A stretch of 63,639 nt of DNA, filler included, from Reticulomyxa filosa (Eukaryota; Protista; Foraminifera), in NCBI GenBank assembly GCA_000512085.1. It is 20 parts of 20 records of this genome, joined end to end, with 100 filler letters (N's around TTAATTAATTAA, not from the genome) between each part and the next. Parts side by side here need not be neighbours in the genome. Positions count along the whole stretch, not along the records: positions 5,612 to 13,761 come from ASPP01002453.1; 19 more parts are not named here. One strand, written 5' to 3'. Shown here in pieces: positions 5,612-13,878 of this stretch. The notes under the pieces are model-generated. The model did no database searches. It saw only the letters and a list, made by a program, of their open reading frames with translations, and had not been told where the DNA came from. How positions within the stretch are numbered: position 1 is the first letter of the stretch; every line of letters starts with the position of its first letter. Made by a program: the position numbers and the translations under genes.

Positions 5612-5822
5612 ATATACAAAAACATGTGCTTTGGCCTAGCTATTGAAAAGCACATTAAATCAGAAAACAGCTTGACAATGAATGAATTAACTAGTCTAGT
5701 GTCGAGCAAAGATTATTGAATCGATAGAAAGAAAAAATGAGTGATGAGAAAAAAAGATTATGGGAACAATCTGAGTAAATAAAAAAGATCTTCAAAATGA
5801 ACGAGCTAAAGTTGAGGGAACT

Positions 5823-7064
5823 GTGCACTTAATAAATGTGTACACTCAAGGTCTCAGAGCTTTGGAGAATGACATGGTCACTGTTTCTGGCGATTTACTT
5901 AATTATAGTCATACTTATGACTTGTATGAAAAATACGCAGAATATAAAAGTATAGAAGTTAGATTTACCCATATATATGAGTGTATACACGATATTGTTG
6001 AAAAAACTAATCAATGGAAGTGGGAGGCTCTTCTTACTGTGCTAGGCGATTCATATAGTGTACAGATAAAAGAAGAAGATTTATATAATCTTTCCCAAGT
6101 AGACGCTCTTATAGAAGCTAATGATAAACTAGAAGCCAAGGGGAATGTTGTTCTAGATAGTGATACAATAAATAGATTGAAAGAAATAAAAGTTTTCTTA
6201 AGCAATCCAACTTTTCTAAAATTAAAACCTGATTTTGCAACATATAGTGAATTTAAAATTATTTATGATAAATTAGCTACACACAAGGCAAATATTGAAA
6301 AACTTCATGATAGCTATGAAGAATTATTACGTATTGCGATTAATGTATCAAAAAATATTGATGATAAAGATGAATTGGTAAAGTTAAACTTGAATGTAGT
6401 ATATAAAATGCTAGATTCTCTTATGGAAACGATAGGTTTTAAAGCAGGATCCTTTAGCCAGAACAAAAAAGTTTCGGATGTCAGTGTGACATCATTGATT
6501 GAGACAATCTATGATACTATTTTTGCAAAACCAGATGCAAAGTATGATATAGAAGACCATGAGAGGAAGCATGTGTCTAAGAAGCAACTCGTGGCAATAG
6601 ATTCTGATATCGTGATTCAAAAGATCCATGAGAAATTTCAAAATCTTACTATAGCTCTTATTAGTGATGCTAAGACCTGCTGTTTTGCTTCAGTCATCCC
6701 AAAATATAAAGAAGCTTCAAATTGTCTTATTACTTTGCCCAATAACTATCTTGATGAGAAAGCATGCTCCTCTCTTTATGAAAAAGCAACTGTTGCTATG
6801 AGCAATTGTGAAAGTATTTTCCCGATGAAAACTATGTACGACAAGCAAATTATGAAGCTTTTAAAAGCCTCTGCTTCTGTGAAAGTTGGATTAGCTAATG
6901 ACGAAGCATCAACTTTAATATTTTACCCTCATGCAGACAATGAGCTTAACCAAGAAGAATACAGCAATAGTGATATACAAGATCCAAATGTAATAAAATT
7001 ATTTGATGCATATTTTTATAGTGACAACAACAAGTTAATGTTGCAGGATAGATATGAGCTTTAA
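5823..7064 (+). CDS. Hypothetical protein (413 aa, probably helical) on the bacterial contig
   Basis: Long intronless ORF with no motif I recognise. The start is uncertain. Confidence 0.6.
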   Translation: MHLINVYTQGLRALENDMVTVSGDLLNYSHTYDLYEKYAEYKSIEVRFTHIYECIHDIVEKTNQWKWEALLTVLGDSYSVQIKEEDLYNLSQVDALIEANDKLEAKGNVVLDSDTINRLKEIKVFLSNPTFLKLKPDFATYSEFKIIYDKLATHKANIEKLHDSYEELLRIAINVSKNIDDKDELVKLNLNVVYKMLDSLMETIGFKAGSFSQNKKVSDVSVTSLIETIYDTIFAKPDAKYDIEDHERKHVSKKQLVAIDSDIVIQKIHEKFQNLTIALISDAKTCCFASVIPKYKEASNCLITLPNNYLDEKACSSLYEKATVAMSNCESIFPMKTMYDKQIMKLLKASASVKVGLANDEASTLIFYPHADNELNQEEYSNSDIQDPNVIKLFDAYFYSDNNKLMLQDRYEL

Positions 7065-7081
7065 ATTGAGAGGTATATTTT

Positions 7082-7414
7082 ATGAAGCTAACTAAATTGG
7101 GATTCAAATTCGGCACGTTGAAAGATGCAGAAATGAAAGTGCAGGATACAGAGGCTACTCTTGTAGGCAAGGCATATAGTTTCTTTTCAAATTATTTCGG
7201 ATCTTTAAATTCTGAGATGCATTCTAAACAGGCTCAGCAAAGTGGCAAAAATTATTTTAAATTTGATGATGCGTATGTTAAGGGTACACTCAAGAATTCT
7301 GGAAGTTTATTCAAATTCGGCACGTTGAAAGATGCAGAAATGAAAGTGCAGGATACAGATACTACTCCTCTTGTAGAAGCATCTACTAACTTTGACCATG
7401 TAGATCTTATATAA
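7082..7414 (+). CDS. Hypothetical protein (110 aa) with an internal duplication
   Basis: SD-like GAGG lies just upstream of the ATG. The peptide FKFGTLKDAEMKVQDT occurs twice. Confidence 0.5.
   Translation: MKLTKLGFKFGTLKDAEMKVQDTEATLVGKAYSFFSNYFGSLNSEMHSKQAQQSGKNYFKFDDAYVKGTLKNSGSLFKFGTLKDAEMKVQDTDTTPLVEASTNFDHVDLI
7102..7359 (+). repeat. 51-bp perfect direct repeat (7102-7152 and 7309-7359)
   Basis: ATTCAAATTCGGCACGTTGAAAGATGCAGAAATGAAAGTGCAGGATACAGA occurs twice, with a 207-nt offset. Confidence 0.95.
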
Positions 7415-7501
7415 TCAAAGCTCTTGCCTATCTTGCATGATATTTTCATCATAGTATGCCTCGAGTAATTTAATTTCATTATGATACCGCACTGGATTAC
7501 T

Positions 7502-7529
7502 CTTCAAAGCTGCCTGTGCGGCAGTTAAC
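7502..7529 (-). CRISPR. Single type I-F CRISPR repeat, GTTAACTGCCGCACAGGCAGCTTTGAAG
   Basis: It is 28 nt with the CTGCC-(5 nt)-GGCAG Cas6f hairpin and closely matches the I-F consensus GTTCACTGCCGTATAGGCAGCTTAGAAA. It lies 130 nt downstream of cas6f on the same strand. There is no second intact repeat. Confidence 0.9.
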
Positions 7530-7659
7530 CCAAGCATTTAAAGCTAGCAAGGTATATATATAGCGGCTTTTAAGTAATTTACCATAAAAACCATTATTTT
7601 TAGATATGCAATAAAAAGCCTGATTCCAGAGGCTTTCAAAATTACTAAAAAAATTTTGG
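7530..7659 (-). promoter_or_regulatory. Putative CRISPR leader
   Basis: AT-rich 130-nt interval between the cas6f stop and the first repeat, with T- and A-tracts. This is the canonical leader position. Confidence 0.6.
7610..7637 (-). terminator. Possible intrinsic terminator after cas6f
   Basis: On the minus strand, AAAGCCT-CTGGAATC-AGGCTTT runs into TTATT (7-bp stem followed by a U-tract). Confidence 0.45.
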
Positions 7660-8232
7660 TTAAAAAAATGGTACCGTTGCATTATAACTTAAACCAAAAG
7701 TATCAAATCTACCCTTATGTTCTATTTTTTCTTTTTTAATCTCTATATATCTTCTGTATTTTTGTCCAGTTGAATAACTATATAACTCTAAATATGCATT
7801 AGATAAACTTCCCATACACATTTTAATTTTATATTTCTTTATACCATCCGTCTTGATGGAGTTCCTTTTTCTTAATCTTCTCAGTTTAGCATTGCTCATA
7901 TTTTGTTGTACGCGTGATATAATTCTATACTCTTTAATTACCGAAGGTATAGATAATATATTGCTCAAGATACAATTTTGCTTTAAATCTGCTACTAACT
8001 GTAATGCCACTGATAACTTCTTTAAGCTCTCTTCGCTTGAATGTATTCTTAAAATTCTTCCAAGAGATTGATATCCATCTTCATATTTTATATATTGCGG
8101 AAAATCTATCCCTATATCACTTGAATTCATCTCATATAAAATCTTGTGCACTTCATTACAAATATTGTTGCGCAATATATTCAAGCTTACTGTATTATTT
8201 GGCTTAATTGTGAGATCAATGTAGTGCCCCAT
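7660..8232 (-). CDS. cas6f: Type I-F CRISPR endoribonuclease Cas6f (Csy4)
   Basis: It has N-terminal HYIDLTI, a catalytic His in EVHKIL, an Arg-rich helix AKLRRLRKR, and C-terminal GRFDTFGLS...TVPFF. The likely start is the ATG at 8232 (the ORF track starts at 8262). Confidence 0.92.
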   Translation of the reverse strand: MGHYIDLTIKPNNTVSLNILRNNICNEVHKILYEMNSSDIGIDFPQYIKYEDGYQSLGRILRIHSSEESLKKLSVALQLVADLKQNCILSNILSIPSVIKEYRIISRVQQNMSNAKLRRLRKRNSIKTDGIKKYKIKMCMGSLSNAYLELYSYSTGQKYRRYIEIKKEKIEHKGRFDTFGLSYNATVPFF

Positions 8233-8239
8233 ACTTAAC

Positions 8240-9238
8240 TCAAAGTCTAATGCTGTTAACATAAGCTAACCCCTTTTTGCCCAAATAAAAACTTGAAACA
8301 CCTGCATATTCCATCAGCTTATATATCTCCTCAGCTTTGCCTCTATCAATATTTAAGCTTATTTTTAGTTCTCCACTAGCTTTCTTAAGGGTTAAATTTT
8401 CTTTACCTTTGCCTTTAATATAGTTGTCTTTAATATAGGGATTGCCGTAAATCATCTTACGACCAGCAAATTGCTTCATAAAGTCTTTCGGAGTAAAACT
8501 TTTCTTAGCTATACCCGAAAGCCCTCCTTTTTTTGATAATGCAGCGCTTATATCATACTTCTTTTCCAATTTATCTAGTTGCAAATAAAGGGCTGAACAA
8601 TAAAAAGAAATAGGCATTATCATTTGGTTTTTATCATAGTAATTTTGATCACTGTAAAAATGCTGTAAAATTTTTAATGCTTCTGATGTATTGCCTATAT
8701 CTTTCACTTTTTTCATTTTTTTTATTTCTTTAAATCGCTCACAGATAAGAATAGGGCATAATTTCCTTGAATTTATTTCTACCTGTTCAGTAATAATAAA
8801 TTCACACAACTGGTTAAAATCAAGATATAAAATCTCCCATAGCTGACTAGAATAATCTGAAGTCAGAATAGGGTGACATGGATTAACAGTTCCTGAAAAA
8901 GAGTCTTGATCATAATTGTCTTTCTTCATATTTCTGAGGTAAACTACTTCATGATAATCGGATTTATTATCTTCCCAAGATATTAAATTCTCAATCGCTC
9001 CAAAAAAATAATTTCTATCCTGTCTTGATTGATAGAGTTTGCGTTGATCTCCAATTAAACGATTTAAAATACCCATTACGGTATCTATGGTAATCTCTCT
9101 TTTAATAAAATTATTCTTATCTCTTAACTGCTGGAAAGAAGCAATAAATTTACGAGATTTTTTATTTAGCGGCTCGTTATTATTACCATCTAAAAATGAA
9201 TTACGCCAACTACCCTCATATCTTAAAGTAATTTCCAT
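8240..9238 (-). CDS. cas5fv: Type I-F2 (I-Fv) Cas5fv
   Basis: Begins MEITLRYEGSWRNSFLDG, contains TVMGILNRLIGDQRKLYQ and ends AGVSSFYLGKKGLAYV. Size (about 330 aa) and position between cas7fv and cas6f match the Shewanella putrefaciens I-Fv system. Confidence 0.88.
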   Translation of the reverse strand: MEITLRYEGSWRNSFLDGNNNEPLNKKSRKFIASFQQLRDKNNFIKREITIDTVMGILNRLIGDQRKLYQSRQDRNYFFGAIENLISWEDNKSDYHEVVYLRNMKKDNYDQDSFSGTVNPCHPILTSDYSSQLWEILYLDFNQLCEFIITEQVEINSRKLCPILICERFKEIKKMKKVKDIGNTSEALKILQHFYSDQNYYDKNQMIMPISFYCSALYLQLDKLEKKYDISAALSKKGGLSGIAKKSFTPKDFMKQFAGRKMIYGNPYIKDNYIKGKGKENLTLKKASGELKISLNIDRGKAEEIYKLMEYAGVSSFYLGKKGLAYVNSIRL

Positions 9239-9249
9239 ACAATAATTCT

Positions 9250-10233
9250 CTAATCTTTAGCGTAAAAATAGGTAGCATAATTATCTGAAGCACGGCTATT
9301 AATCTCACTGTGACCTTCAGTTCGTTTTACCCTCATCATCTTATCGCTATCATTATAATCTACTTCAATAGAATCAACATACATGTAAGATTTGGCTTGG
9401 CGAATTACAAGATTACGTAGTTTATCTAGCATATGCTCTACTAATACCGAAATTGCAACATTATTGAGTAATATACCTACTTCTCCTTCTTCAAATATAC
9501 TACCTTTACGTACGTAATTTTCATGTAAAGTAGCTTGCACTAAAGATGACTCAGGGCTCAGACTTTTTATATAAGCCATAATTTCTTGTTTAGCTTTTAC
9601 TTCTCCAGAAGTATCTAACCCACATATGGCTGGTCGCTCAAATTTACGATCTAACGAAATAAATTGTAATTGCTCAATGCTAATTGAGCCATAAGAAATG
9701 TATTGTGTATCTCCAAAGGTGGTCTTAGAATAAAATGACGACTCATCTTTTGTTCCTGATTGGCCAAATTGTTCGAAATTACCATTACCAAGTTGGTCAA
9801 CAAAATCTTCTAATAACAAACAACTAATACGCTTTTCTTGGCTGGATGGTATAACATATCCACGTAATAACCCTGTATCGGAAGCTAAAAGCTTAATCTT
9901 ATTATCTTCTTTACATTCTTTTTTTTGGCTTTCAACATAATGTAAATCAAATGCTTGCTCTCTAAATAAATGATGTCTAATACAATTTTGGCTAATATAA
10001 AGAGGTGTTTTTTTAAAATCTACATCCCGAGCTTCTTTAGGATATTTGTAACCAGTTTCTTCTTTGATTTTACCAGATAAATTAGTATAACCTCTCAATT
10101 TAGGCATTGTATGGTTATTAACATTTTTGTTGTCTGCACCAGCAAGAGTAGTAACGCCATTCCAGTTCACTACGCCATGTCCTTTTGCTACAATTTTAAA
10201 GTCTATACTCTTGATACCTGTAATTTTTTCCAT
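9250..10233 (-). CDS. cas7fv: Type I-F2 (I-Fv) Cas7fv backbone protein
   Basis: Contains [50 protein letters not shown] and [10 protein letters not shown]. It is the first Cascade gene after cas3. Confidence 0.9.
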
Positions 10234-10235
10234 AT

Positions 10236-10448
10236 CTATTCTTCCTGGTAAATGTTATTAATTTCCTTTACAGAAGGCGCTCTAATCTTATTAATTTTTT
10301 TTACAGAAATCACTCCAATAGGATTTTTTTTACTTTTAGCATAATAAAATGAAGATTCGCAAGGTGTATCATGGCAAGAATTCAAATCTTTAGGAGTATA
10401 GCTCAAAAAAATAGGCTTATCTGGATATCTTGCTTCTTTTTTTAACAT
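10236..10448 (-). CDS. cas3: C-terminal fragment of Cas3, separated by a frameshift
   Basis: It overlaps the cas3 stop, its frame stays open upstream to 10499, [15 protein letters not shown] resembles I-Fv Cas3 C-termini, and its stop abuts the cas7fv start. Confidence 0.7.
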
Positions 10449-13057
10449 CTCGGGCTTTTTGTATTTTTTTCCCTTGCAGTTAGTATTTTTTCGTGCTTTT
10501 TATACATAAAACTAAGGCAATCTTGGAAATCTTCTTTATTTTTATCCAGCGACATAATAACCGTTGCCTCTTCTTGACAAATATATTGGTTAAGAATTGG
10601 ATTATTGCCATTCTCATCATATTCCATTATGGCCATTTGCACATACACACTATCGCCACGCAATGAACTGGCCTTTAGTTTAATACCCCCATTTTTATGC
10701 TTCTTTACCCTAGGTAATCGAATTGGATCGTATAATTTGTTCTTTAATTGAGTAATACCTTCTTTCAAAACTTGCTTCAAATCTTCCTCGACCTGTTTTA
10801 AACTTTTTTCATCTTCATAAAATTCTTTATAAAGCTCATAAAGCTGTTGTAGCATAACACCATTATCGTCAGGTAATTTCTTTTTAAGAAATTGTAGCCA
10901 AGCTTTAGCTGCATGAAAATCACAGCATTTTTTTAGCCATCTCGCACAGCTACTTGACGCTTTTTCTTTTTCATACAGAGAATACGGGATATGAACAATA
11001 TAAGTATTAATGTTATTATTATTTAAACCAAAACGATTTAATCTGCCCAACCTCTGCAAAAAATTTTCAGGAGAAGAGAGCTCTGTTATCATATGATCGC
11101 AAGTTATATTGAAAGAAGCCTGAATAATTGGACCTGCTCGCAATATATCATATTCTCGAGTTCCATCTTGACCAAATGCTCTATAAATATCTTTAAAAAT
11201 TTTACTTCTATCCAGATTAGTAAGGTTACTATGAATTAATAATGCATTTTCATTGAGATGTTGTATAAACCCCAATTGAGCATCTAACGCTGTATTGGTA
11301 ATTATAAAGGTAGTTTTACCGTTTGGCTGGTGCTCTTCAGAAATTAATGGGGATACTTCAGGGTTATCTTTATAAGAACGAAAAGTTATTTTATACGAAG
11401 AACGATTAAAAGTTTCAATGCCGATAATGCAATCCTGATGAATGCCCAAAAATTCTTTTACAAAATAAGGATTGGGTGTTGCTGAAACCAATAATGTATT
11501 AGCTTCCTTACCTCTCATTTTTTTTGCTTCGATTAACTCTGCAAATAATACGTTTATTCCAAGAATTTTAATTAACTCGTGAAATTCATCAAATACTACA
11601 TGAGAACTCAAGAAATTTATAAATGCACTGACTTGTTGATGAGTAGTAACCATATTAATTATTTGATCTATAGTTGTAATAACTATATCTCCTGAAAATT
11701 TCTCTGAATCGCCTGTATCTGTTTCTTGCCCGTCGTAAGTTATTTTTTGAAATTCACTAGTCAAAAGCTCGATTTTAACTCCTTGAGCAAGATATTGTTT
11801 GCTACCCAGCTCTTTATATAAACCTTCGCAAATTTGCACTCTGGGACAGACCCAAAAAATCTTTTGAGCTCTAGTATTAAATGCCCATTCTAAAGCAATT
11901 TTAGTTTTACCACATCCAGCAGGCCCCTTCAAAACCGCTATACTGTCTTCCAAATTACCACTATTTGATATATGAGCTAATGTTACTGCAGCCTCTTTCT
12001 GTCGAATATTTCTCTCTTTATCCCCAGAACTATTAAACCGCTCTAAACATTCTTTTATTTTCTCCCTCAAGTTGCTTTCCTGAGGCCTAGTACGGGGATC
12101 TATTAAAGTATCTAGATTACAGCTTTCTAAATCTTCAACTTGAGATATAATCTTATCTGCTGAAATTACTGCCGATCTTAAAATACTATTTTTACTATTC
12201 TCTAGCACTTGATATTTGTACCTTTCATAGTCAGTAAAATCTGAAAAATCCTTATATGAGGGTACATGAGCATTCTTTGGTAATTCCTTACAGATAGATT
12301 TATCAGCTTTTAAAGCTATATTATGTCCAAAATTATATTTTTTAGCTTGACTATTCACCTGATCAATAATCTTTTTGATTTTTTCAGTCATGGAATCAAA
12401 GTGATTTTTAAACGCATAAAAAATCCCCTCAAGCTTTTCAAAATTATTCTTTTTCCTATAAGGCTTAGGGTGATGCCAATATATAACGTGCTCGCAAAAT
12501 TCATAAAGAGTCTTATTACCGACTGCATTATAGTCAGTAAGCAAGTGAAACAATACAAGAGAAATTTCATTATGTGTCGGATGTTCTTCAAAATCAAACT
12601 TTCCTCTATCTATATGAACCCCATCTTCAAAACTTTCTTCAGTAATTCCTTCTTTCAATTTTCGTTGCAGCCAATCCTGAAATTGCGGATCAATTTTCCC
12701 CATATCATGCCAAACTCCTGACACATACGCCGCTCTTGCTAATGGCTCCTGTTGAGGAAAAAGTTGTTCCACTATACGATAACTTAAATAACCAACTGAA
12801 AAAAGATGTCTGTTAAGCTCTTGTCTTTTAGTATTTGCAAATATTGAATTACTAGATTCGTTTTCCTTATATTTTATAAGCATTTTGTTTTTACTATAGT
12901 GAACTGGCACCATACCCTCAGAATTAAATTCTAATCTACTTCCTACAACCCATTCTAACTGAGCGCCTATACGGCTTCTAATTAAATCTCCATCTCCACT
13001 ATAGTTATTCGAGTTAAATGGATCAATTAATTTTTTAAGTTTAAGTATAATGCAAAA
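10442..13057 (-). CDS. cas3: Cas3 HD nuclease-SF2 helicase with a truncated Cas2 remnant at the N-terminus
   Basis: HD motif WHDMGK, Walker A GPAGCGKT, DEFH, SAT and QRLGRLNR are present. The frame is open upstream of the ATG at 12913 to 13057 and reads ...LIRSRIGAQLEWVVGSRLEFNSEGMVPVH, which resembles the end of the I-F Cas2 domain. Confidence 0.9.
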   Translation of the reverse strand, partial: FCIILKLKKLIDPFNSNNYSGDGDLIRSRIGAQLEWVVGSRLEFNSEGMVPVHYSKNKMLIKYKENESSNSIFANTKRQELNRHLFSVGYLSYRIVEQLFPQQEPLARAAYVSGVWHDMGKIDPQFQDWLQRKLKEGITEESFEDGVHIDRGKFDFEEHPTHNEISLVLFHLLTDYNAVGNKTLYEFCEHVIYWHHPKPYRKKNNFEKLEGIFYAFKNHFDSMTEKIKKIIDQVNSQAKKYNFGHNIALKADKSICKELPKNAHVPSYKDFSDFTDYERYKYQVLENSKNSILRSAVISADKIISQVEDLESCNLDTLIDPRTRPQESNLREKIKECLERFNSSGDKERNIRQKEAAVTLAHISNSGNLEDSIAVLKGPAGCGKTKIALEWAFNTRAQKIFWVCPRVQICEGLYKELGSKQYLAQGVKIELLTSEFQKITYDGQETDTGDSEKFSGDIVITTIDQIINMVTTHQQVSAFINFLSSHVVFDEFHELIKILGINVLFAELIEAKKMRGKEANTLLVSATPNPYFVKEFLGIHQDCIIGIETFNRSSYKITFRSYKDNPEVSPLISEEHQPNGKTTFIITNTALDAQLGFIQHLNENALLIHSNLTNLDRSKIFKDIYRAFGQDGTREYDILRAGPIIQASFNITCDHMITELSSPENFLQRLGRLNRFGLNNNNINTYIVHIPYSLYEKEKASSSCARWLKKCCDFHAAKAWLQFLKKKLPDDNGVMLQQLYELYKEFYEDEKSLKQVEEDLKQVLKEGITQLKNKLYDPIRLPRVKKHKNGGIKLKASSLRGDSVYVQMAIMEYDENGNNPILNQYICQEEATVIMSLDKNKEDFQDCLSFMYKKHEKILTAREKNTKSPRC

Positions 13058-13137
13058 CTATACATATTCTTCATTTTTAGACATACTTCTGGCACACCAT
13101 AGCCTCTGGGGCTATTTATCCATAAAGTCAAACTTTC

Positions 13138-13758
13138 TTAAGTGCCTGTGCCGCTATTCTTTAATTTATTTATTCTTTCTTCACTTAGTTTAGTATAACT
13201 CATAATCTTTTCTATAGGTTCACTCGCTAGTATCATTGCTTTTGCCATAGCTACCCTCTCTTCCTCTTGGCCTTCAGCCTTACCTTCGACCCTACCCTTT
13301 TCTATACCTCTAACCTCTCCTATAGATTCACCTTCTTTTAATCCTTTAGCTTCGCCTTCTGCTCTGGCATTTTGTAAATTATCCTGTAGCGTCATCTCCT
13401 CAGCCTCAGCTAGCAATCGTGCCCTTATGTATGCATCGTACTCTCCTTCACTCCAGTTAAATCTCTCAAGCCTGTCATATGCCTTAAGCACAAATGGATC
13501 TTTGACACTTACAGGTGGCTCTCCTGATCCTTGTGAATTAGCCAAAAAATATAACCAGTAATCTTCTATACTTTTAAGTTCATTCTCTTTCTTCTTAAAT
13601 TTCTCAAGCTCTATAAATACATAAGATAACGCAAATAAATGTTGCTTGTTTGTCATCTCTTCTTTCGTCTTGTGATAACTGATATACCCCACATCAGAAG
13701 GAAGAATCTTCTCCTTGCTTATCGCTATAAGTATTACAGGTAATAATCCCTTATGCAT
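13138..13758 (-). CDS. Rpn-family (PD-(D/E)XK nuclease / putative transposase) protein, 5'-truncated by the contig end
   Basis: Contains YVFIELEKF, YWLYFL, AYDRLERFNWSEGEYDAY, G-x-x-x-G repeats (AEGEAKGLKEGESIGEVRGIEKG) and the C-terminal AKAMI...IMSYTKLSEERI helix motif. Confidence 0.85.
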   Translation of the reverse strand: MHKGLLPVILIAISKEKILPSDVGYISYHKTKEEMTNKQHLFALSYVFIELEKFKKKENELKSIEDYWLYFLANSQGSGEPPVSVKDPFVLKAYDRLERFNWSEGEYDAYIRARLLAEAEEMTLQDNLQNARAEGEAKGLKEGESIGEVRGIEKGRVEGKAEGQEEERVAMAKAMILASEPIEKIMSYTKLSEERINKLKNSGTGT

Positions 13759-13878
13759 TCCNNNNNNNNNNNNNNNNNNNNNNNNNNNNNNNNNNNNNNN
13801 NNNNNTTAATTAATTAANNNNNNNNNNNNNNNNNNNNNNNNNNNNNNNNNNNNNNNNNNNNCAAGATCGCGATGTCGC

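Follow-up and report, generated by a model that had tools for sequence, protein, structure and literature searches.

Organization of the locus

The genome assembly of the foraminiferan Reticulomyxa filosa (GCA_000512085.1) includes a bacterial contig, C2453, that carries CRISPR-associated (cas) genes here assigned to subtype I-F2 (I-Fv). The contig corresponds to positions 5612–13761 of the window, i.e., the whole stretch of 63,639 nucleotides (nt), filler included, that was analyzed, while the assembly searched alongside it comprises 101.87 Mb in 50,809 contigs. A compact cas operon occupies the minus strand of C2453 in the order cas3, an open reading frame (ORF) of 70 amino acids (aa), cas7fv, cas5fv, cas6f, leader, and repeat. 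A first-pass annotation of the window had already proposed the order cas3, cas7fv, cas5fv, cas6f, leader, and repeat between positions 7502 and 13057; its gene identities are borne out by profile and PDB matches, but the strand had to be corrected to minus. Genes of the operon are separated by 2–12 nt or overlap, and no further ORF of at least 50 aa occurs in the operon frame. Since the intergenic gaps are so short, there is no room for a cas8f/csy1 gene, and profile searches of the effector operon proteins returned no family match to Cas8f/Csy1, Csy2, or Csy3, in keeping with the absence of cas8f/csy1 noted at first pass. Upstream of the overlap with a sister contig described below, the cas3-cas7fv-cas5fv unit is present as a single copy in the assembly. 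The guanine-plus-cytosine (GC) content of C2453 is 32%, and the third-codon-position GC (GC3) of its cas genes, 21–26%, is in line with that of the flanks.

All three effector genes are intact and align end to end with chains of the I-Fv Cascade of Shewanella putrefaciens (PDB entries 5O6U, 5O7H, and 9G44). The gene for the Cascade backbone subunit, cas7fv (9250–10233, minus strand), encodes 327 aa that span the entire NF040577 profile (positions 1–317 of 317; 427 bits against a cut-off of 200 bits) and match PDB chain 5o6u_C over its full length (460 bits; residues 1–326 to 1–315). Downstream, cas5fv (8240–9238, minus strand) encodes 332 aa that cover positions 1–152 of the 158 in PF20158 (212 bits) and align with 5o6u_F from residues 1–332 to 1–336 (330 bits). 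In I-Fv systems, Cas5fv binds the 5′ handle of the guide RNA, and its inserted helical domain replaces the large subunit. The third effector gene, cas6f/csy4 (7660–8262, minus strand), encodes an endoribonuclease of 200 aa that matches PF09618 (139 bits), TIGR02563 (126 bits), and 5o6u_B (112 bits); its true start is likely to be M11, at position 8232. The catalytic histidine of Cas6f aligns with that of the S. putrefaciens enzyme (NEVHKIL versus TKFHKAL), and this motif, like the HD and helicase motifs of Cas3 described below, is present in the alignments, as had been claimed at first pass. Because the profile hidden Markov model (HMM) and PDB matches are full-length and the repeat fits the I-F family, the subtype is, on sequence grounds, I-F2 (I-Fv). 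The same subtype call had been made earlier, and it stood up when positions 5612–13761 were checked with Cas HMMs, which gave Cas7fv, Cas5fv, and Cas6f matches in addition to the full-length 5O6U alignments.

Truncation and apparent frameshift of cas3

The cas3 gene (10442–12913, minus strand) encodes an HD nuclease and superfamily 2 helicase of 823 aa, with matches to TIGR01587 (106 bits), the HD family TIGR01596 (53 bits), and PF22590. Its alignment retains the HD motifs (WHD, then WHH), a Walker A motif (GPAGCGKTK), and DEFH. When compared with the canonical 965-aa Cas2/3 fusion of L019, an I-F2 locus on a metagenome contig, the protein is 46% identical over residues 87–902 only, such that its start coincides with canonical residue 87. 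Immediately upstream, at 12914–13000 on the minus strand, lies an in-frame remnant of the Cas2 domain that comprises roughly its final 25 residues; it sits behind a stop codon and lacks a start codon of its own. Its translation, LIRSRIGAQLEWVVGSRLEFNSEG, matches WLRSRSRIDLLWIVGSKQKFNEQG of the L019 Cas2/3 in an alignment made by eye. No match to the Cas2 domain (PF21384) was found among the window proteins, and none of significance was found across the 102-Mb assembly. Of the Cas2 part of the Cas2-Cas3 fusion, a signature of type I-F that helps to connect adaptation with interference, only the non-coding remnant is left.

An exhaustive search of representatives identified Cas2 fusions as the closest relatives of this Cas3 (44% identity). 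Taken together, the alignment beginning at residue 87 and the upstream Cas2 remnant indicate a 5′-truncated cas2/3 gene as opposed to a primary stand-alone cas3, and the remnant, as judged from its sequence, marks descent from a fusion by loss and not a separate family. The truncation is internal to the contig, as the remnant runs into unrelated sequence, with in-frame stop codons, and the gene for a recombination-promoting nuclease (Rpn), which is the upstream neighbor of the truncated cas3.

The 3′ end of cas3 is also altered. A three-frame translation set against the canonical sequence places the loss of frame at a run of seven A residues (10464–10470, minus strand) within GGGAAAAAAATAC, and, as assembled, the final ~60 Cas3 residues lie in another frame past this run. 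They are encoded by the 70-aa ORF (10236–10448, minus strand), a detached C-terminal tail of cas3 that is 53% identical to residues 908–960 of the L019 Cas2/3 (E 6e-18). Compared with the homologues, one base may really have been deleted in the A7 run, or the run may contain a sequencing error. Also considered was a programmed −1 slip at A_AAA_AAT, which is conceivable from the sequence but is not claimed here. The 70-aa ORF was weighed as a small subunit or an anti-CRISPR protein and rejected as either, its sequence being that of the Cas3 C-terminus. At the very end of the detached tail is a 33-nt (11-codon) tandem duplication at 10251–10316, with 79% identity between its halves, which makes the tail ~17 residues longer than that of the canonical Cas2/3.

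No cas1 gene occurs anywhere on C2453, nor was a low-GC cas1 found in the whole 102-Mb assembly. The sole Cas1 of the assembly is a type I-F fragment at positions 181–750 of contig C16553 (L011, G000:C16553; TIGR03637, 286 bits). With its GC content of 61%, the contig, and therefore its Cas1, belongs to another bacterium, so the fragment was rejected as the missing adaptation gene of the locus. The assembly thus holds two unrelated I-F systems, this second one coming from a high-GC bacterium. The first pass spoke of intact HD, helicase, and Cas6f motifs, but the module as a whole is not intact: it has no cas1 and only a truncated Cas2 domain, the 3′ end of cas3 is frameshifted as assembled, and the array is down to a single repeat on the contig.

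Leader, repeat, and dispersed array fragments

Downstream of cas6f is an AT-rich CRISPR leader of 130 nt (7530–7659, minus strand), followed by a single type I-F repeat of 28 nt (7502–7529, minus strand), GTTAACTGCCGCACAGGCAGCTTTGAAG. The repeat matches the Rfam family CRISPR-DR4 (RF01317) with 38.6 bits (gathering score 35), was found in none of 200 shuffles, and folds as an I-F hairpin with a 5-base-pair stem, a 5-nt loop, and an 8-nt 3′ handle. A search tolerating up to six substitutions found one repeat copy in the window, and C2453 contains no spacer.

A sister contig, C19500 (L009), matches positions 7501–8389 of the window over 890 nt at 99.9% identity, an overlap that includes the 3′ end of cas5fv, cas6f, the leader, and the first repeat. 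The sole difference between the two is a one-base indel in the leader. C19500 then goes on as an array in which three perfect repeats and a degenerate last one accompany three 32-nt spacers. The read set therefore contains two versions of the array end, which may represent different strains, cells, or copies. A search of the assembly for protospacers of the three spacers found none and returned only a second copy of the array tail, on C37079 (L100), that is 98.7% identical to that of C19500 over 374 nt.

Additional repeat fragments are dispersed as mini-arrays, in each of which a spacer-like stretch is flanked by a good I-F repeat on one side and a degenerate one on the other. They occur on C29446 (L008, 405–453), C19500 (217–285), and C18412 (L010, 2854–2937), where the stretch is 21–28 nt in length, and on C37079 (1186–1318), with which the range extends to 21–32 nt. 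RepA_C and ParA-like fragments occur on C37079 and C18412, as do an rve fragment and a truncated methylase gene; the RepA_C and ParA-like fragments suggest that part of the CRISPR debris resides on plasmid-derived DNA. A fragment of the Rpn gene with stop codons adjoins the mini-array of C29446. The simplest reading of these pieces is that recombination broke up what was once a single locus, in a genome with abundant mobile and plasmid-like DNA.

Several smaller features were noted among the fragments. A spacer-like core of ~27 nt (…GAAACATAACGTCTT…) is common to the mini-arrays of C29446 and C18412, and in C37079 it is inverted relative to its repeat. The ParA-like (AAA_31) and RepA_C fragments lie beside the repeat remnants at 2550–5236 of C37079 and 1591–2076 of C18412, and these two contigs are 94.7% identical across 489 nt. 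Finally, exact 44-nt repeats link window positions 5612–5655 with 3640–3683 of C19500 and also occur at 1–44 and 76–119 of C18412. As they are found both at contig ends and within sister contigs, these may be short repeats, scattered through the genome, at which the assembly broke.

Host assignment

One neighbor of the operon that bears on the host is the Rpn gene (13138–13758, minus strand), which encodes a PD-(D/E)XK transposase-like protein whose N-terminus is cut by the contig end (PF12784, 49 bits; TIGR01784). Among 5.8 billion proteins, its best match, at 80% identity, is labeled Reticulomyxa filosa, and the next named relatives are from Candidatus Cyrtobacter comes (56%) and a Rickettsiales endosymbiont of Peranema (59%), both of which are Midichloriaceae. 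The protein is also 53–62% identical to the products of multi-copy genes in three of 47 Midichloria-family genomes.

Five contigs of the assembly carry bacterial 16S ribosomal RNA genes. Four of them have flanks of 48–61% GC, and the fifth, C5849, has flanks of 28–29% GC. An exact 16S pattern gave no match among the genome contigs searched, and a more tolerant pattern, a 35-nt signature of the C5849 gene, matched 45 genome records, almost all of them Rickettsiales. Over its full length, the C5849 gene is 91.2% and 90.8% identical to those of two Candidatus Midichloria genomes and ~85% identical to that of Rickettsia. Searches of the assembly for EF-Tu and GroEL recovered only sub-kilobase bacterial fragments. 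The Hsp20 gene on the sister contig C19500, at 46–48% identity to Midichloriaceae genomes, equals the best found anywhere and is uninformative for taxonomy. Finally, GC binning alone was rejected as host evidence: the protist-like contigs are themselves ~34–36% GC, so GC alone cannot separate symbiont from host.

A Midichloriaceae symbiont of R. filosa has previously been re-assembled from the original reads, with a genome of 1.306 Mb and 37.5% GC (Castelli et al. 2024, PMC10847448). Its 16S gene lies on a 3.5-kb contig, similar in size to the one found here, and its best match is that of the Acanthamoeba UWC8 endosymbiont at 93.6% (PMC10847448). The table of that article puts the ribosomal RNA contigs of the symbiont at a depth of about 89–101×, and the assembly is deposited at Zenodo (10.5281/zenodo.10324454). 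The contig had been called hidden in the protist assembly at first pass, but the symbiont itself is already published. The proposal of a Rickettsiales-type endosymbiont of the protist as host agrees with the Midichloriaceae 16S gene in the assembly and with the best named relatives of Rpn. No mention of CRISPR was found in the article text or in the supplementary files checked (PMC10847448).

From indirect evidence, namely the relatives of Rpn and the sole 16S gene with low-GC flanks, a Midichloriaceae symbiont emerges as the most likely host, and it is probable that C2453 belongs to the symbiont of R. filosa from this family of Rickettsiales.

Relationship to known I-F2 systems

Subtype I-F2 had been regarded as uncommon in the first-pass annotation, a view that is difficult to maintain given 2460 Cas7fv matches, a plasmid-borne locus in Legionella longbeachae, and an intact locus in the Rickettsiales genome G119. 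Named hosts of Cas7fv include Vibrio, Shewanella, Marinomonas, Moritella, Colwellia, Oligella, Methyloprofundus, and others, and the protein is also present on plasmids of Acinetobacter and Legionella. Among 401 sampled GTDB Rickettsiales genomes, however, Cas7fv was found in just one, G119.

In the Cas7fv tree, the window protein is the long-branched sister (support 100/99) of a clade that includes L019, a Joint Genome Institute (JGI) metagenome contig, and protein P0004 of a Methyloprofundus metagenome-assembled genome (MAG), and it stands apart from the Rickettsiales G119 and Legionella plasmid systems. Members of this nearest clade are 69–71% identical to the window protein, and the best identity to anything known is 71–73%, which argues against a recent contaminant. 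The long branch, together with a GC3 of 21–26% that resembles the flanks, points to an old horizontal acquisition that has since evolved inside the symbiont.

Comparison with canonical I-F2 loci (L019, L020/L021, and the L. longbeachae plasmid) provides a measure of what is missing. Their typical order is a WYL regulator, cas1, cas2/3 (965–995 aa, with PF21384), cas7fv, cas5fv, cas6f, and a long array. The repeat of L019 differs from that of the window at two of 28 positions. Unlike the window, canonical environmental loci possess the WYL regulator, cas1, a full 965-aa Cas2/3, and, in L019, an array of 82 repeats. The I-Fv system of S. putrefaciens CN-32 shares with the window the order cas3-cas7fv-cas5fv-cas6f-array, the lack of Cas8f, Csy2, and Csy3, and a 28-nt hairpin repeat. 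The window differs from it in lacking cas1, in having a Cas3 with no Cas2 domain and a frameshift near its 3′ end, in its one repeat (three spacers in C19500), and in its GC content of 32% and long Cas7fv branch. The CN-32 array reportedly contains 81 spacers.

Two further loci come from an intracellular bacterium and from another Rickettsiales genome. The L. longbeachae plasmid pB1445CHC_73K carries an I-Fv system from an amoeba-associated intracellular host, with a Cas7fv 65% identical to that of the window. Unlike the window, the locus belongs to a facultatively intracellular gammaproteobacterium, resides on a conjugative plasmid, and is a complete cas1f-cas2/3-cas7fv-cas5fv-cas6f set. Contig 8 of G119, a GTDB Rickettsiales genome and thus from the same bacterial order as the presumed host, has a similarly low GC content (31.5%) and the same repeat core, CTGCCGCACAGGCAGCTT, but its locus is intact, with a Cas2/3 of 973 aa, cas1 past cas6f, and 17 repeats. 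The two are 60% identical in Cas7fv and 38% identical in Cas3, and a partial 16S gene of G119 is 82% identical to that of the assembly. As G119 is placed apart from the window in the Cas7fv tree, it represents a separate acquisition. The G119 locus (L089, G119:C8, 6070–14164) has an unusual order of its own, cas2/3-cas7fv-cas5fv-cas6f-cas1-array; its Cas6f is extended to 291 aa, with the Csy4 match limited to the N-terminal ~170 residues, and an ankyrin-repeat gene lies beside the array.

The closest parallels in gene content are three metagenome loci, L097, L098, and L099, which resemble the window in having a cas3 of 869–882 aa with no Cas2 domain, followed by cas7fv, cas5fv, and cas6f, with no adjacent cas1. 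In L098, the operon is followed by a short array in which the distal repeats are decaying. In contrast to the window, the Cas3 proteins of all three have a clean start and no Cas2 remnant, and the Cas7fv proteins of L098 (54% identical to the window) and L097 (66%) do not group with that of the window in the tree. The window Cas3 is closest to Cas2/3 fusions and was truncated independently of these loci, and the existence of Cas1-less I-F2 operons in metagenomes indicates that loss of adaptation has been recurrent within the subtype. More broadly, many Cas3 representatives of 820–890 aa lack a Cas2 domain, and those checked lie in cas1-less cas3-cas7fv-cas5fv-cas6f operons. To judge by these sequences, this looks like a widespread, adaptation-less I-F2 lineage, for which no description was found in the literature searched.

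Proposed history and alternative explanations

In the intact I-Fv system of S. putrefaciens, Cas6f cuts the repeat hairpin, and Cas7fv, Cas5fv, and Cas6f assemble on the resulting CRISPR RNA (crRNA) into a Cascade with neither a large nor a small subunit. The helical domain of Cas5fv then reads the protospacer-adjacent motif, and Cas2/3 is recruited and degrades the target DNA. Against this background, the locus is probably an eroded I-F2 interference module, most likely of a Midichloriaceae endosymbiont of R. filosa. Such a system would have come by horizontal transfer from a lineage with a canonical Cas2/3 and would then have taken on the surrounding base composition and eroded; a Methyloprofundus MAG belongs to the nearest Cas7fv clade. 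A deletion beside the Rpn-type nuclease/transposase gene, in which Rpn itself may have had a role, is proposed to have taken out cas1 together with ~60 codons from the start of cas2/3. In the A7 run, the 3′ end of cas3 would have been put out of frame, and the array would have been reduced to one repeat in C2453 or three spacers in the co-assembled variant, with other repeat fragments spread by recombination.

Several consequences would follow. Spacer acquisition should no longer be possible, and what remains would at best be a capacity for interference with fixed spacers or for DNA binding. The single-repeat version would be unable to give a complete crRNA, of which the three-spacer version should still be capable. 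Most likely, therefore, judging from what its genes would still encode, the system is on its way to being lost.

A number of observations weigh against this history. The A7 frameshift may stem from an error in sequencing the homopolymer, and the junction at the single repeat may reflect a variant of the assembly or of the population. Moreover, cas7fv, cas5fv, and cas6f are full length and stop-free in an AT-rich genome, which implies that function has been retained or that decay is recent. As to the host, the low GC of the protist (~34–36%) makes base composition non-discriminating, the published symbiont genome has 37.5% GC versus 32% for C2453, and the link between C2453 and the 16S gene is indirect, consisting of composition and the affinities of one mobile-element-type neighbor gene.

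One rival reading is that the system is in fact complete and active, with its defects being artefacts of assembly, such as a homopolymer error, a collapsed or broken array, and a cas1 gene on an unassembled or unlinked piece. The intact effector genes would fit, as would the frameshift in a homopolymer run, the very fragmented state of the bacterial parts of the assembly, and the three spacers that follow the same leader on C19500. Nevertheless, the Cas2 truncation lies within the contig, where the remnant is joined to unrelated sequence with in-frame stops and the Rpn gene, neither a low-GC cas1 nor a Cas2 domain was found in 102 Mb, and the existing arrays are very small, with degenerate repeats at their ends. 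An artefact on this scale is considered unlikely. If the damage is instead real, it is conceivable that immunity was given up for another role, in which the mini-arrays would supply crRNA-like guides for transcriptional control or for CreTA/CreR-type addiction, and Cas3 and adaptation would be dispensable. Intact cas7fv, cas5fv, and cas6f next to a damaged cas3 and without an adaptation module would suit such a role, and so would the short-spacer mini-arrays with one good and one degenerate repeat (L008, L009, and L010) and the spacer-like core shared at three places. Against it, neither a target match nor an adjacent toxin-like gene was identified, and the setting of the mini-arrays among plasmid-like and pseudogene fragments fits plain recombinational debris; this non-immune role is thus very unlikely indeed. 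Its most specific form, a domesticated, nuclease-free, RNA-guided DNA binder in a Rickettsiales endosymbiont of a protist, whose Cascade would be kept for mini-array-guided regulation or CreTA/CreR-type addiction, is put forward from sequence as a very unlikely outcome.

The origin of the contig can also be questioned, as it might derive from a free-living or food bacterium of a non-axenic culture or represent bacterial DNA in the protist nucleus. Besides that of C5849, at least four bacterial 16S types occur in the assembly, as does a second I-F cas1, of high GC; C2453 carries no housekeeping marker, and cas genes are known to move horizontally. However, the other 16S contigs have flanks of 48–61% GC, the closest named relatives of Rpn are Midichloriaceae symbionts of protists, the Hsp20 of the sister contig fits Midichloriaceae as well as anything else in the 5.8 billion proteins (46–48%), and C2453 is tightly packed with bacterial ORFs that lack introns. 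A contaminant or nuclear origin is regarded as very unlikely.

Significance

The locus is a rare and decaying instance of a known I-F2 system, in a subtype that is well populated, and it reveals no new mechanism. CRISPR-Cas is very rare in obligate intracellular Rickettsiales (one Cas7fv in the 401 genomes sampled), and the locus would be the second, independently acquired I-F2 system in this group. Moreover, it appears to catch loss under way: adaptation genes were deleted next to the gene of a recombination-promoting nuclease, the Cas3 nuclease is damaged, and the arrays are in pieces. As such, it provides a useful data point for the decay of defense systems during reductive genome evolution, and it is a sign that invading DNA was once encountered by the symbiont lineage. 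The locus would also be a feature that has gone unreported for a symbiont genome already in print.

Neighboring genes

Two large ORFs lie just past the array ends, one of 413 aa in the window (5823–7064, plus strand) and one of 445 aa on C19500 (3282–4619, minus strand). They are paralogues with 25% identity (E 2e-25). Neither has a match in Pfam, NCBIfam, or the Atlas, and none of 47 Midichloriaceae genomes contains a homologue. An ORF of 110 aa (7082–7414, plus strand) with no family match lies between the 413-aa gene and the repeat; it contains two 85-nt direct repeats (7102–7186 and 7309–7393) that are 85% identical and 207 nt apart.

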